A DNA stretch of 64,000 nt from positions 62,001-126,000 of the forward strand of contig CBFFRP010000363.1 in the NCBI GenBank assembly GCA_965644295.1, given 5' to 3'. Below the pieces are notes generated by a model. The model was given only the letters and a program-made list of their open reading frames with translations. It had not been told where the DNA came from and did no database searches. The stretch is from Paraphysomonas bandaiensis. Its lineage: Eukaryota; Protista; Chrysophyceae. Both the position numbers and the translations under genes were made by a program. Positions 27,282 through 35,026 of the stretch are shown piece after piece. How positions within the stretch are numbered: the first letter of the stretch is position 1; the number at the start of each line of letters is the position of its first letter.

Positions 27282-29768
27282 TTACAATATATACTCTCTA
27301 GCAACACTGTATTGAACAATATTTTCTGCTGGGGTACATGTAGTGCGCAAAAGCACGCTTTCTCTAATCCGGTAATGAGTCAAATACTTTTGATTTGAAT
27401 AACAAGATTAAAATTTACAGATAATATTTCAGAGTATTTGTATTGTCCACACTCTCCTCTCTATGTACTATGGTATCTCATTTATATAACACGGAACTAA
27501 CTATCTGTTTACCTTGAGCGAACTGCTCACGCGCATTGTGTTGTACTGAAACGGACTCCGAAAAGTTTGAGCCAAAGGGTTTTCCGTTTGATTAAATACA
27601 GTGTCGAAGAGTTTCTCCCGAAACATGTTCGTCATGTAAGCAGTATGAGATAAGTGCAGAAGTGCGAGGCTATAGATTTCGTTAAAGAGATATAGAGGTT
27701 AGCAGGTGTAGATATATAATACTTACCGGCTATTAGAAATTTTCTGTCTCCTACAGAAGCACCTGCGCACAGAAACAAATTAAAAAGTTCTACAAATTAT
27801 GTAAATCATCTCACCAAGGTTGCTTCTGACGATAATACTTTTGCGCTACTTTATCAGCAGTCCAGGGTCCGTCTTTCGGGTTGTATGACATGCAAGATCC
27901 ATGATTCCAGGAGAAAGGACACACTCCCATTGCATCCGCAAATTTAGGAAATTTCTGATTAGTTGTAGGGCCTGAGTAACACTTCGACATCTCCACGTAA
28001 TTCCTGTTATCCTCATATGCTAATATATAGAATGTTAGAGATGTATAGTTTGCTAAGCTTTACAAACAAAAGCAAAAAGTACTTGCAACAGCAACTCTGG
28101 AAAGTACACAGTATACTGTACATACACCCCCCCACACACCTTTAACGATACAGTTCTCAATCCTTGCTATCACATCACCATCAACTTCCCGTTTGAATCC
28201 TAAAGTATTGGTCGCTGTGGTCCCAGCCAAATTCAGTCTAGCAAACATCCAGTTCTCGCACTGATGTCGCTTAGGACTAGAAAAAAAGGAATCTATTTCA
28301 TTTCGTAAATTTCGAACATCAAAGGAGAATATCAATTCGTCAATATCTACGAACAGTACGACTGGGCTAAGACGAAATTCGAGTCGTGCTGAGTCAAAAG
28401 TCAATTGCTTATCTAGATCTAACAATGCAGTGTCATTCACCTAAGGGAATGATATTAGAGAATTAGTCTTAATACACTTGTATACACCGAAGATATATGC
28501 AACAAGGAACCATCGATGAAAACTCACCACCCCGTCCATGGTCTTTTCAGAATTCAGTTTCTCGCGAACATAGAAATTTAGAAAGTGCTTCGGCTGCATA
28601 TAAAAACAACAATATTACGTTACTGCATTAATACGGTACACAGATGCAAATATTATAGTCATGTAGTAAGCAATATGCTTACGACATACAGCGTAAAGTC
28701 ATCGATGAGCGGTGCATGACGCATACAGCAACAGTACTTGTTACTTACCAAAGTGGCTGCATATTCATAGGTATATATATCAGGGCTAGCTAGCTGCAGT
28801 GCAGTATATGGGTGATAGCGTATGTCATACACAGATAGATACTCTTTAACGACGTCGAAATGCATTCCAAATCGATCAAAAATAACAATGGTAAATCGTA
28901 ACTCCCCATAGTGTTTGATAAACATACCCATATAAGGCCCCGTCATTCTATTTCTAAACACTTGGGCCGTGAATACAACTTTGTTCCACGGAGGAAGAGT
29001 GTTTCTACTGTTTTTTAAAGTAGTATTGGGCATTGAAAACCGACTACGTTCAGCTTCGCGCAACAGGACAAGTCGATTTCCTCCTGCATCAGTTTTATTT
29101 TTGCGATGCGCAATAAACTTTGAATACGCTGCAGTAGAAACTTCTGCCTTAGCGTCTGACTTATGGGATGCAGGTAGTAACATAATAGTTGCTGAGAAAG
29201 ATTTTCGAAATGTATGACAGATCTTATGGGAAGACACGGGTGAAGAGTTGAACGTAGTGCCTTGTCTGGTGCTATTTACCCATACTGGGCAATACACAGA
29301 AACTCGATCATACTCTAAATTAACTGCAAAAAGCATGTAGTAGCATTTTAGTCCCTCCACATGGTATACATCAGAGAGAGCGGTTATATATCCCTTTCCA
29401 CCAGGGACGAGGAAGCTGTGCTTACTAGAAGAGACTCCTATCATGCGCACATGACACAGGTAACCCGGCATATGTGTATCAGACACCGTTAAATTGAGAC
29501 CCTTTAGATTATCTTCATAGAAAGAGGGCATAAACCATTTCCACCACAAACTGTTGGAGTTATCTTCCACAGACACTCCTGTTATGGCAAATGTATTCTG
29601 TTGCTCATCAACAAACGTCTTTGGCTCTGATCTGAACGTTGGGTATCCATGATATACAGTGTGCTTTTGACCATACACAGAGATACTCGTGTTTCTATAT
29701 GTATAATACGAGCCCCACACAAGTAGCAGTAATAATATATTATGAGCGGCTTTCCACAAGAAAGGCAT
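27282..29768 (-). CDS. Type II membrane protein, putative GT-A glycosyltransferase (GT92/DUF23-like)
   Basis: N-terminal transmembrane segment (ILLLLLVWGSY); FIKHYGELRFTIVIFDR and VLFVDIDE (DxD). Multi-exon; 3' exons and stop are tentative. Confidence 0.5.
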
Positions 29769-29897
29769 GACAGCTTATTGAAACTGCATAGCTCAACCCT
29801 CAAGTATATAAAAAGCCGTTTGATAATAGGCCTACTGGACTATTGTGCAAGAATATGACTGTTCGAGTCTCCTTAACATCATCTAGATGTATATGCA

Positions 29898-29959
29898 TAT
29901 ATGTACCTGTATACTATATGTACCTGTATACTATATGTACCTGTATACTATATGTACCT
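29898..29959. repeat. 17-bp tandem repeat (TATATGTACCTGTATAC), about 3.6 copies, in the divergent promoter upstream of the ovothiol gene
   Basis: Read directly from the sequence. Confidence 0.9.
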
Positions 29960-30321
29960 ACCTATATGCTCTATGTACTGCTGTACTGCTGGAGCTATGC
30001 TGCTGTACATCAAGTTGTAAGAGCCACACCATCCCTACCGAGAATACAGGTGGAATACAACCAACTGAGTGGTCTGCTGATGATGATGGTTGAAGATTCC
30101 TGTGTCCGGCAGATTGAATATTTCCCCTCCTGTCACACGCATATCTGATATGGGCATATACGCACATACACTATACTGTACTGTATGCATACGATGTTGA
30201 TGTGGGGTGTATGTGTGTGTATACAGGCAGCAGTTAGCATGCATGTCATCCTCACAGATCTTTAGTTGCGTTGCAATATCACAAACAGATTCGAAGTTAT
30301 TGCAATTAACGAAATATAACC

Positions 30322-33300
30322 ATGTCTATTGGATCATTTAGAGATACGGGACTTATTCTAGCGGATTTACCACCTGATTTACAGTCTCTGAGGACTGGTG
30401 ATATTGATGTCAAGCACTATCCTCTGGATGGAGATGTGGCACACTTAAATCATGGAGCATTTGGAGGATCTCCAAATGAGTTTATTAATATAGAATATGC
30501 ACTGCGTTCTAGAGCTCATAAGAACCCTTCAGCCTTCTATGATACGCTCTGTCTGCCGTTAATTAGAGAGAGTGTGCATGTTGCACGGGACTTCTTTCAG
30601 GGCAATGTTATTCTGCAGCCCAATTGCACCATTGCGTTGAAATCTGTTCTCTCTAGTCTTGGTTCTGATGAAGGCTTGCAAGTTGCTGCATTAGCTCCTA
30701 TATACGGGGCTACATCCAAACTTCTTCGGCACCTTTACTCGGATATCACTGAGATCAAGCCAGGAATGTTCTGCGAATCTGCACAAGAGATCATACGCCT
30801 CCTTGAGCAGGCGTACGCAAGCTCGAAATTTAATGTTCTTGTGGCAGATCATGTGTCCAGTCAGTCTGCGCGAATTCTTCCCATGGCTGAGGTTGTCCAA
30901 TGGTGCCGTGAACGTGGTATCATAAGCATTGTCGATGGAACCCAGGCTTGTTGGTTCCAAAATGATGTATGGCCGGACTACTACGTGTTGAGTACCCACA
31001 AATGGCTCTGTAATATTAAAACGTGTGCTGTTATTCGTATTGACGGAGAAGCGATTGTTCCAGAGCCTGTTGGAGTATCATTTGGTCACCCTGATAAGGA
31101 TGACCGGCATTTGTGGGTGGGAATGCTTGACTATATGCCTTACATCTTACTCGCAAAGGCTCTGCGAGTGTTTTCATCCCAAGGAGCAGATATGGTCGTA
31201 GCCTCTAGTGCTATGCTCCAAGAAGGCTTTCAATACCTCGGCTGCCCTGTCTTGGGCCAGAGCTCTGCTCAACCGTCCTCTGCGCATATGCCTCGCACTA
31301 TGACACTTCTACGTGTGCACCGCTGTGAGGAAGATTTACAGAATGCACTTGAGAGGCAGGGTGTGTGCGTATCTGTCAAGAATCTTGAAGGTAATACGTA
31401 CCTGCGTGTCTCCTGCTGGACGTACAACACCTTGAAAGACTTTCAGCTGCTTGGCGAATGTCTCAACTACAAGCTCCGACTTGATGCTGCAGTTGGAAGC
31501 ACGAAAGAGGCACAGGAAACACGCAAACGCGGCCAAATACTCGAGCAAATTGAGGCACAAATGGACCTCACTGACAAACTTTACTCCCATCTAACTGTGG
31601 AGGCCTTTTTTATTCGGGCCGAGAAATTGCGGCACCCGTTAATATTTTACTACGGTCATACTGCTGTATTTTTTATAAACAAACTATGTTTAGGCCAGTA
31701 CTTGAGCGATGCGGACCGCATTGACCCAGAACTAGAGTCTCTCTGCGCTGTGGGTGTGGACGAAATGACCTGGGATGATTTAACTGTTGGTGAGTGGGAT
31801 AAAGTTAGTCCTGAGGACCAACCTAAGCAACTGGAAAGAGTACGAAACTATCGACAGCGTGTGAGGGAGATTTTACGAAATATGATACTGAACCCTTCTA
31901 ATGAGCTTAATCTCCCGATTACTCCATCCAGTATTTGGTGGGTATTTTTGATGGGTATTGAACACTCCCGCATACACATTGAGACTTCCTCTGTGATAAT
32001 TGCACAGCTCGGTGTGGAGTATGTGACGCCTTCTCTCGCTTGGCCAGTGTGCCCTCATCAGACGGACAAGGCGCCCGTCAACTCCCTCATTTCTGTCGCT
32101 GGTGGTGTTGTCACACCTGGTCGACCTCTGAATGGAACCACTTATTATGGGTGGGACAATGAATTTGGCAGTGGGAGAGGTATCCAATTGGAGTCGTTCG
32201 AGGTCAGCCAGACGCTTGTCAGCCACGCTGAGTATGCGGAGTTCGTTAATAGCGGAGGCTATAACAACCAGGAGTGGTGGTCGGCGGAGGGATGGGAATG
32301 GGCAAAAAACAAGCAAGGGCCACTATTCTGGAATGTGAACTGCAAAGGTATTAATGCTGTGCAATATTATATTTCAGCTTAATTTGTGTTATGTGATGTA
32401 TTATATTAGGTAATCGCTCTGAAGACGCCAAATTGCGCACCATAATGCATGAGATCGATCTGCCACCCTCATGGCCAGTGGTGACCAACAACTACGAGGC
32501 TGAGGCCTTTTGCAACTGGAAGTCGAGCGTATTGGGAAAACACGTTAGAATGATATCTCATCCTGAATGGTTGCTACTGGCGAAACGCTGCAAGCGGCAA
32601 GACTATAATATTAACATGCGAAAGTGGGCGAGTCCGTGTCCTGTAGATATGCATGGGGAACCATTAGGCCAGGATGGTAGCATGGTGTATGACATTCGTG
32701 GAAATCTCTGGCAACATTCCCGCTCACTTCTAACTGTTTTGCCGGAGTTCGAAGTTCACCCCTTGTATGATGATTTTACTCTACCGACTATCGATGGACA
32801 GCACAGTTTTATTCTCGGTGGCTCGTGGGCGTCACTCGGCAATTGTGCAGACGTTGAGGCGCGGTATGGATTCAGAAGGCACTTTTACCAATTTGCTGGG
32901 ATCCGGTATGTTTGCTCGAGGAACGAGGACCGCAGTGCACCTGCCCGCCTCGTTCAAGGAGAGGTGTGTATAGCACTTTCAGAGCACTATATGAATTTTT
33001 CAAGTGATATTCTGACTACCCCAAGGCCAGTTATGAACGGAATGAAGGAATTTGGTCAGTATGCTTCCACTTTTATATCAGATCAAGACAATGTGCTGGT
33101 TCTCAATGGCAGTGTAGGACGTGTGACATTTGAGATTGCTGCTCATGCTTCCCCAAAGAGTATTTTGCATACTGACCCTACTGCGAATGCTCTGGATGCA
33201 TTCCTGTATGCCCGAGAAAACGGGACGATTAGATATGAACGTACACTAGAGGGGAATTTGTGTAAAACGGAGTCGTACGATTTGCCTTCGGAATGGCTAG

Positions 33301-34608
33301 ATGCTATCCGAAAGATAGATGTGTCTGTCAAGCAAGTGGATATGTTTCGTTTGGCAGTTGGGGTAATAGAACCTGTGGATGTTGCTGTAGTAGATTTGGT
33401 GCAGCTAGGTGTGTTCAACTGTCCTCGCCGGGCACAAATCCCTCCGCTTTTATTTTCACTGGTCAAAGAAGGAGGCAAGCTAATTATGCTACGACCCAAG
33501 AATGCCTATAAGACAAGTTCTGAGAACCTCCGAGTATCTGGGTTTCAGGACACAGGAATGAGGTACGATATCGCACACATTTGCCCTGAGACTATGCGCA
33601 AACACCGGTTCAGTGAGTCGGAGGTCCTAGTGTTCACTAGAATCGGAGGAGAGGAACTGAGCTGTGTCACAGGAAGTGGGACATCTTCTGAATGTTGCTC
33701 ACCAGACTGTACGCCGCTGTACGAGCAGTGTGATGTGGTGGACACATACGAAGCTTTTCACTATTCGGACCAACCCGTAATAGGTGTGAAAAACTTCCAC
33801 ATCGCGTGTGCAGAATTCTGTGTAGAGCTGTGTCGTGAATACGGGGTGACCTTGGAGCATGCTTTTGACGTGGGATGTGGCCCTGGGAGACTGGGTAAGT
33901 TAGTATTGTTCCGTACATCTGTCTATGACTCACTGCATGCGCCATTTTGATTGAAATAATGTGTTATCACATGTCAATATGTTGAAACCAGAGTTTAGCC
34001 TATGAAAATCTAATTGGTATTTGAAGGATTGGAACTATCTGCACATTTCAAGAGCGTTGTGTCCATGGACCAATCCGAAGCGTTTGTCGATATGCTTGAG
34101 TCTAGAAAGGCAAGCAATGTCACAGCTGTCATCGGAGATGCGCTGTTTGCCCACAACGATGAGAGAGTTGGAGGAAAACGCTATAACCTCATTGTTGGGG
34201 CTAATCTGGTAGACCGCTTGCTTGACCCCTCTGCTTGGATCCAGAGTGCTAAAGATCTGCTCTCTGATGACGGATTGCTAGTGATATTGTCTCCGTTTAC
34301 TTGGTCGAAGGAACACACTCCACCGGAAAAGTGGCTAGGTAGGCATATAACATTTATTTAATTAAATATGTAGATACATGTACTGTACTGTTTTCTATTT
34401 ATACGCGTTACTAATTGTGCATGGTTTATGCACAGGTGGATTTCGGCGTGATGCTGAGGTTGTGTACTCCATTCATGGGACGAAGCGTGTTGCCGCTCCT
34501 GAGCTCACCCTGAAGCGATCACCTCAAGAGATTCCTATGGCTATTCCTGATGCTGATGGAATTGTGCAGTATACTCTTTCCCAGTGTCTAGTTTTCGGGC
34601 GTCAGTGA
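30322..34608 (+). CDS. ovoA: Multifunctional ovothiol synthase: PLP C-S lyase + OvoA (DinB_2/FGE-sulfatase) + two methyltransferase domains, about 1331 aa
   Basis: Exons 30322-32347, 32410-33894, 34027-34338 and 34436-34608 (3996 nt, in frame). Lyase: HLNHGAFG, IVDGTQ, STHKWL. OvoA: LRHPLIFYYGHTAVFFINKL, AVGVDEMTWDDL, MGIEHSRIHIETSS (HX3HXE), YGWDNEFG, ARYGFRRHFYQFAGIRYV. Second methyltransferase: FDVGCGPGR, GANLVDRL, SPFTW...WLGGF. Confidence 0.93.
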
Positions 34609-35026
34609 GCTCTCTACATCATTCAGGCGAGCTTTTCACACTTACGATTGTTGCGTGCAGAGTAACCCACGCATTAATATATATTGAATTGATTCTACTC
34701 ACCTATCTTAATACATTTTACTTGACACAACTATCATTTAAGGTATTGCAAATAGTTCCAATGCGGAACTCCGGCTCTGTTTATGTGGGCAATTTAATAT
34801 CTTACTTTATTGGTTGTTGGACCATAATTCAATAATTATTTTTGTTTCGTCGTGGTGACTTCTAATTTTTTTGTTTGCATCATCATATGTGGATAAGATA
34901 AGTTATGATGGATGTGCGCTTCGCTGCACATATTGCGATGATACTGTGGAAGTGAATGCATATTACTGCTATATAATATTACGTTGTGGTAAAAGCGGTC
35001 CATAGTATATTTGGAATACATTATAT

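Follow-up and report, generated by a model that had tools for sequence, protein, structure and literature searches.

A probable single-chain ovothiol synthase of the lyase-OvoA fusion family in the chrysophyte Paraphysomonas bandaiensis

Few natural thiols are stronger antioxidants than the ovothiols, and their biotechnological production is of interest. The described system closest to the gene reported here is Hydra vulgaris LOC100215679, published as an "OvoB-like-OvoA" fusion (Gerdol et al., 2019, cited through PMC8433421); in the literature its fused lyase is presented as OvoB-like and derived from Bacteroidetes. The single steps are represented by OvoB of Erwinia tasmaniensis (PDB 5Z0Q), a MalY-type lyase of aminotransferase class I/II, by bacterial OvoA such as OvoA_Th2 (8KHQ), by the stand-alone methyltransferases OvoM and OvsM (9BXL, 9BXH) and, in the sister ergothioneine pathway, by the lyase Egt2 of Neurospora crassa (5UTS, 5V12, 5V1X). 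The present analysis concerns a stretch of 64,000 nucleotides (nt) of Paraphysomonas bandaiensis (assembly GCA_965644295.1, contig CBFFRP010000363.1, positions 62,001 to 126,000 of the forward strand), hereafter called the window, in which a four-exon gene of 1331 codons lies on the plus strand at positions 30322-34608, with a coding sequence of 3996 nt according to the open reading frame (ORF) listing and hand-inspected junctions. With this gene, the lyase-OvoA fusion family of hydrozoan type gains a new and well-expressed member from a protist, and the gene product is predicted, with a probability of about 0.75, to be a single-chain ovothiol synthase belonging to the eukaryotic fusion family first described in Hydrozoa.

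The fusion family and its proposed pathway

Comparison with Hydra LOC100215679 (1429 amino acids, aa) revealed five colinear domains in both proteins, with identities of 35-37% in the lyase (E 2e-52) and 49% in OvoA. Both genes carry the lyase in their first exon, and the two proteins fall in the same clade in both of the trees described below. They differ in host, here a chrysophyte protist and there an animal, and the hydrozoan lyase has extra inserts of about 60-90 aa. Searched alone, the Hydra lyase domain had Egt2 as its best match and gave no match to OvoB. More distant full-length fusions were also found in the diplonemid Namystynia karyoxenos (1370 aa), the amoebozoan Dracoamoeba jomungandri (1467 aa), the syndinian Amoebophrya sp. 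(1929 aa) and Hydractinia symbiolongicarpus (1396 aa); as with the Hydra protein and the metagenomic fusions, their alignment to the window protein is colinear across the five domains. Eukaryotic metagenome and Logan contigs yielded seven close relatives, 52-60% identical, and in all seven the lyase continues into OvoA within one ORF. An earlier reading of the window from its letters alone (the sequence-only reading) had placed the novelty of the gene in the combination of this lyase type with a double methyltransferase, a claim that had to be given up: Hydra LOC100215679 is a full-length homologue with both features, and the architecture is, as judged by these alignments, already known from the hydrozoan fusion.

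The analysis adds several points to the literature. The fused lyase, that of Hydra included, belongs to an Egt2-like class-V family and not to the OvoB family, so that the ovothiol and ergothioneine pathways have recruited related lyases. The fusion occurs in stramenopiles, euglenozoans, amoebozoans, alveolates and hydrozoans, and Hydra is not unique; both halves have one phylogeny, in which hydrozoans stand beside a syndinian alveolate; and a second OvoM-like domain, invisible to Pfam, is carried by all members of the family. The picture of how ovothiol is made is unchanged by these findings. A natural single chain with every step would be a convenient target for production and for structural work. 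Literature searches, with subscription journals mostly outside their scope, returned no paper on ovothiol in chrysophytes or on protist lyase-OvoA fusions, which is a weak negative.

According to the proposed mechanism, the OvoA module (DinB_2 plus FGE-sulfatase, with non-haem iron) would convert histidine, cysteine and O2 into 5-histidylcysteine sulfoxide. The N-terminal Egt2-like lyase, acting as a homodimer with a Schiff base on Lys227, would then take off the cysteinyl part as pyruvate and ammonia to leave 5-thiohistidine, and the C-terminal OvoM-type S-adenosylmethionine (SAM) methyltransferase would methylate the N-pi of the imidazole to yield ovothiol A. The divergent methyltransferase copy in the middle could serve as a partner or scaffold, or could perform a second methylation. 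All enzymatic activities of the fusion protein, and its product, are predictions from homology; the function of a self-sufficient ovothiol synthase is well supported by this homology together with the conservation of the fusion. In the sequence-only reading it had further been suggested that substrate may be channelled between the domains and that the gene may point to a lyase of eukaryotes.

Gene structure and transcription

Contigs of four public runs were aligned to positions 29800-34950 of the window. A single contig of run X1 spans 30280-34790 and skips exactly the three predicted introns at GT..AG joints, and a single contig of run X2 spans 30307-34848, ending in a tail of 22 A, with the same three joints. 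The joints were identical in a marine poly(A) metatranscriptome (X5), and the introns were kept in a DNA run (X17). The ATG at 30322 is the first of the mRNA, none being present between 30280 and 30322, and an in-frame TAA is located at 30307-30309. The gene is expressed as one spliced, polyadenylated mRNA, with room left by the transcript contigs for further, shorter transcripts. All three introns are in phase 1, and the G+C content is 0.44-0.50 within the gene against about 0.38-0.41 in the flanks. The MMETSP transcript-derived "complete" protein P0289 (1331 aa) contains all four exon products exactly, starting at residues 1, 677, 1172 and 1276, with one residue for each split codon; it was used for the analyses of the full-length protein, and the exons were otherwise searched one by one. 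In the 62.6-Mb assembly, the lyase and OvoA are each single-copy, and both are within this gene. The coordinates of exons, introns and domains are given in Table 1.

These results leave a negligible chance that the fusion is an artefact of prediction or assembly in which two genes were read as one. The junction of lyase and OvoA lies inside one exon without a stop codon, the whole ORF is spanned by single transcript contigs from independent runs, and the same domain order is found in transcriptome-derived full-length proteins of unrelated species; a gene-model artefact was rejected on the spanning contigs. The sequence-only reading had proposed that lyase, OvoA and methyltransferase domains form one polypeptide, independently of any splice prediction, and this stands: the junction is inside the uninterrupted exon 1, and one mRNA with one ORF carries the lyase, OvoA and two methyltransferase-like domains. 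An mRNA starting downstream of the lyase, which would have overturned that proposal, received no support. The motifs listed for 30322-34608 were all recovered in place, with one correction to the exon assignment: the lyase and the first 278 residues of OvoA, with the iron motif, do share exon 1, whereas ARYGFRRHF (aa 826-834) is encoded in exon 2, past an intron of 62 nt.

Table 1. Features of the lyase-OvoA fusion gene, in positions of the window
Feature	Position	Strand	Remarks
Mature mRNA	30280..34848	+	From transcript contigs; 5' end no later than 30280; polyadenylated at 34848
Exon 1	30322..32347	+	Start codon, entire lyase, linker, DinB_2 and start of FGE-sulfatase; aa 1-675 plus 1 base
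Intron 1	32348..32409	+	62 nt, GT..AG; joint in X1, X2 and X5; retained in DNA run X17
Exon 2	32410..33894	+	Remaining OvoA synthase, divergent methyltransferase copy, start of canonical methyltransferase through motif I
Intron 2	33895..34026	+	132 nt, GTAAGT..AG; transcript joints
Exon 3	34027..34338	+	Core of canonical methyltransferase
Intron 3	34339..34435	+	97 nt, GT..AG; transcript joints
Exon 4	34436..34608	+	C-terminal part of methyltransferase and TGA stop (34606-34608)
Putative class-V (fold-type I) PLP C-S lyase, aa 1-395	30322..31506	+	Lys227, Tyr128, Asp205, Gln208, His226, Thr103, Ser180, Arg362
Predicted OvoA 5-histidylcysteine sulfoxide synthase, aa 398-843	31513..32912, intron 1 inside	+	DinB_2 409-555, FGE-sulfatase 587-843
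Iron motif HX3HXE	31963-31983	+	EHSRIHIE 547-554; H548, H552, E554
Divergent OvoM/OvoA-C-terminal-like methyltransferase fold, aa 844-1112	32913..33719	+	Motif I altered to LNGSVGR
Predicted canonical OvoA C-terminal SAM methyltransferase, aa 1113-1331	33720..34605, introns 2 and 3 inside	+	Motif I DVGCGPGR, 1162-1169

A second transcript-derived protein, P0397 (MMETSP Transcript_5115, 1353 aa), equals P0289 plus 22 extra residues after residue 1152 (window about 33780-33840). The visible start of the insert (PVIGV) repeats the segment just before it, and the genome window has no such duplication; P0397 could represent another allele or isoform, or an error of the Trinity assembly. Marine poly(A) metatranscriptomes contain near-identical spliced transcripts (window 31349-34786 in run X5), and thus the organism and this gene are active in the sea. 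These transcripts show one G>T difference at 31473 and a 1-nt insertion at 32303, which, at a contig depth of 3.8, is probably an error. At its N-terminus (window 30322-30345), P0289 opens directly on the family-wide IGSFRD motif, with no N-terminal extension. It has no evident targeting peptide, in contrast to a diatom OvoA reported to be mitochondrial.

The lyase domain and the origin of the fusion

The N-terminal domain contains the motifs HLNHGAFG (41-48), DGTQ (205-208) and STHKWL (224-229), with the lysine that would bind pyridoxal 5'-phosphate (PLP), Lys227, encoded at nt 31000-31002. When the single domain was searched against PDB sequences, the best solved relative, at E 1.7e-11, was Egt2 of N. 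crassa. With a profile built from 13 fused domains, the match to Egt2 reached E 2.2e-26 and was followed by LolT at about 1e-17, with weaker matches to PvdN and SufS (about 1e-6) and to the mycobacterial EgtE structure (8e-4). Only class-V families were matched by the domain, no assignment to the Aminotran_1_2 class was obtained, and E. tasmaniensis OvoB was absent among the PDB matches at E <= 1 for the single sequence and at E <= 0.01 for the profile. An OvoB-type (MalY, class I/II) identity was rejected on the missing 5Z0Q match and on the class-V matches, in agreement with the Egt2/CefD-like signature recognized in the sequence-only reading. Since the two enzymes are of different aminotransferase classes and show no sequence match, the lyase would be an analogue of OvoB, with which it presumably shares β-elimination on 5-histidylcysteine sulfoxide, and not a homologue at the family level.

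Structure prediction pointed in the same direction. An AlphaFold2 (AF2) model of the domain (predicted local distance difference test, pLDDT, 78; predicted template modelling score, pTM, 0.84) was compared by Foldseek, and the top 17 matches were all Egt2 chains. Alignment with Egt2, whose residue roles are described in PMC10805701, paired Tyr128 with Tyr134, Asp205 with Asp221, Gln208 with Gln224 and His226/Lys227 with His246/Lys247, and further Thr103 with Thr107 and Ser180 with Ser196; the mapping covered these residues, out of a set that in Egt2 also has the substrate-histidine contacts Phe48, His276 and Phe304, and Cys156. The paired PLP and catalytic residues, together with Arg362, a putative carboxylate-binding arginine, show no or almost no variation among the 13 fused domains, which come from distant lineages. 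Prediction of a lyase homodimer gave an ipSAE of 0.83 against 0.00 for the best control, a mark that 21 of 30 same-chain pairs of known structure attained and none of the 23 single chains did; the runs had 94% or more of their contacts in common, with a pLDDT of 85 or higher, and the interface is built from conserved motifs. This score may reflect the model's memory of class-V dimers, and the predicted homodimer is accordingly listed as a likeness to Egt2 and not as binding.

The domain thus resembles Egt2 in its class-V, fold-type I character and in its matching PLP and catalytic residues, but identity is about 20%, its length is 395 aa against about 470, and the extra C-terminal elements of Egt2 are lacking. 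Its presumed substrate is a C5, non-betaine sulfoxide, and it is fused to the synthase, whereas Egt2 is free-standing. The failed EgtE family model, the weak match to the EgtE structure and the separate clade on a long stem all indicate an Egt2-like class-V lyase that is a relative of Egt2 rather than its orthologue. The same long stem branch (0.94), and scores below the Pfam and NCBIfam thresholds, would fit a catalytically dead module retained for dimerisation or as a scaffold. This is very improbable, given that the PLP lysine, the aspartate at the pyridine nitrogen, the glutamine at O3', the tyrosine for stacking and catalysis and the residues that bind the phosphate have stayed invariant or nearly so in the 13 diverged sequences.

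Phylogenetic analysis of the lyase placed 17 fused domains in one clade (100/100), apart from 16 free-standing class-V relatives, with Amoebophrya as sister to the hydrozoan group (98/93). The OvoA tree grouped 14 fused proteins with one N-terminally truncated sequence (P0294) in a clade (100) apart from 36 unfused, mostly bacterial OvoAs, and Amoebophrya and the hydrozoans were placed together (99). Both trees were built under LG+G4 with no mixture model, a setting more prone to long-branch artefacts, and with midpoint rooting only. The OvoA tree included three unfused eukaryotic OvoAs, all oomycete-like, with Vitrella and animal OvoA left out, and it does not bear on the nesting of the fused clade among unfused eukaryotic OvoAs. 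Since the lyase and OvoA trees agree, the fusion appears to have arisen once and to have been inherited or transferred as a unit thereafter. For the hydrozoan gene, the most likely origin is acquisition as a whole from an alveolate-like source: the position of hydrozoans beside a syndinian alveolate in both trees argues against a Bacteroidetes origin of the Hydra lyase, and the trees favour a fusion that was transferred or inherited ready-made over one assembled in Hydrozoa with a lyase from Bacteroidetes.

Retention of the fusion in at least five distant eukaryotic lineages, with halves that share one history, is a classic sign of consecutive steps in one pathway, and it bears on the alternative that the lyase domain acts on something else, supplying or removing a substrate as a desulfhydrase or desulfurase of cysteine or as a relative of the epimerases, with an unlinked lyase of broad specificity cleaving the sulfoxide. 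Chemistry within the same class-V subfamily is indeed varied, LolT being a Mannich cyclase and others "isopenicillin-N epimerase" or cysteine desulfhydrase (C-DES), and the literature treats the ovothiol lyase step as one that can be borrowed from housekeeping lyases: it has been described as tolerant ("broad specificity β-lyase"), and cleavage of a related thiohistidine sulfoxide is described for CsdA, an enzyme of class V. Nevertheless, the closest solved relative of the domain is the sulfoxide lyase of the sister pathway, the tyrosine that is catalytic in Egt2 is invariant, and no second lyase homologue was found in this genome, so that such a different role is unlikely and cleavage of the 5-histidylcysteine sulfoxide by the fused lyase is preferred.

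The fused lyase also has class-V relatives that are free-standing (26-31% identity: P0142, P0136, P0141, P0155; P0164), among them a protein of the limpet Patella caerulea (P0142) and, from the choanoflagellate Salpingoeca rosetta, an "isopenicillin N-epimerase". In the literature, an OvoB-like lyase has not been found in animals outside Hydrozoa, and the free-standing class-V family is therefore worth considering: by Rosetta-stone reasoning from the fusion, Egt2-like members such as P0142 would be candidate ovothiol lyases for animals with unfused OvoA.

Synthase and methyltransferase modules and the flanking region

The OvoA module covered positions 9-444 of the ovoA_Nterm model (TIGR04344) with a score of 475.3 bits, above the cut-off of 400, and P0289 reached 114.7 bits for EgtB and 111.9 bits for SenA (NCBIfam). 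Downstream of it, methyltransferase domains had been noted in the sequence-only reading, and two copies similar to the C-terminal part of OvoA were indeed found. Pfam detected nothing in residues 844-1112, and generic SAM-methyltransferase families matched at about 1160-1273 (Pfam and NCBIfam on P0289). The structures of OvoA_Th2, OvoM and OvsM were the best matches of both copies: for the C-terminal copy, 8KHQ was matched at 7.6e-55 and stand-alone OvoM at 1.4e-52, and for the middle copy at 3.5e-17 and 3.9e-14, respectively. BLASTP of the middle against the last copy was not significant (E 0.13), and hhalign aligned the two over 179 columns with a probability of 90.6% (E 1.3e-6). An AF2 model of the middle copy (pLDDT 82) had its best Foldseek matches, between 1e-16 and 1e-13, in OvoA_Th2, OvsM and OvoM, well ahead of generic methyltransferases (1e-8). 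Taken together, the structure matches, the hhalign result and the Foldseek ranking indicate that the middle region arose by duplication of the OvoA methyltransferase and has diverged.

Each of the two copies holds a part of the ancestral motifs. The middle copy retains the OvoA hairpin (IRY....EGE), the Q.D motif, the β-2 aspartate (HTD) and the segment RET.RKH. In motif I it has NG(S/G)xGR instead, and NLIDRL and SPxTW..WLGGF are lost. The last copy retains DxGCGxGR, NLIDRL and SPxTW..WLGGF and is without the hairpin. Bacterial OvoA such as OvoA_Th2 has one methyltransferase, whereas the window protein has two copies with the motifs split between them. When the middle domain of P0121 served as query in a word index, P0121 itself was the sole hit; the index does not cope with a domain this divergent, and the search is uninformative on its distribution.

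That the middle copy is catalytically active and performs a methylation different from that of the C-terminal copy is doubtful. The obvious candidate reaction would be N-alpha methylation, the enzyme for which is listed as "unknown MT" for ovothiol B and C (PMC12631010). Organisms with ordinary OvoA also make ovothiol B, and for this reason the middle copy is a weak candidate for the N-alpha methyltransferase. If it did perform a separate methylation, four activities would be united on one polypeptide and the product would be ovothiol B or C.

Several results weigh against the assignment of the gene as an ovothiol synthase. The lyase domain scored 17.5 bits with Pfam Aminotran_5 (cut-off 21.5) and 24-25 bits with the NCBIfam EgtE model (TIGR04343, cut-off 400), both below threshold. 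The ovoA_Cterm model (TIGR04345) gave 155.2 bits for the whole protein, in three stretches, and thus missed the cut-off of 170 that is passed by Hydra (217), Namystynia (196) and P0124 (191). Profile searches of this kind had been proposed together with the original claim, and they recovered DinB_2, FGE-sulfatase and ovoA_Nterm, with Aminotran_5 and ovoA_Cterm remaining below their cut-offs. Moreover, AshA has been reported as an OvoA-like enzyme with C2 (EgtB-like) regiochemistry, and given this precedent homology does not prove at which carbon sulfur is inserted.

This last point leads to the alternative that the product is another thiohistidine, with sulfur on C2 or with a different substrate or methylation pattern. 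It would be in line with the resemblance of the lyase to Egt2, an enzyme of the C2 pathway, and with the presence of two methyltransferase-like domains rather than one. It is quite unlikely, more so than a different role of the lyase, considering that the OvoA equivalog-domain model was passed, with the EgtB and SenA scores as low as given above, and that both methyltransferase copies are nearest to OvoA_Th2, OvoM and OvsM, which act in the methylation of 5-thio- and 5-selenohistidine. Synthesis of ovothiol thus continues to be the preferred reading of the fusion.

Upstream of the gene, the neighbouring ORF of 369 aa on the minus strand (window 28659-29768) had no match in Pfam. A perfect 17-nt tandem repeat, TATATGTACCTGTATAC, is present in 3.6 copies at window 29898-29959, in intergenic sequence about 360 nt upstream of the start codon. 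It separates the lyase-OvoA gene from the divergent ORF, and the contigs of the DNA run break there. A contig of run X2 touches 29800-29849 and may mark a transcript of this minus-strand ORF.

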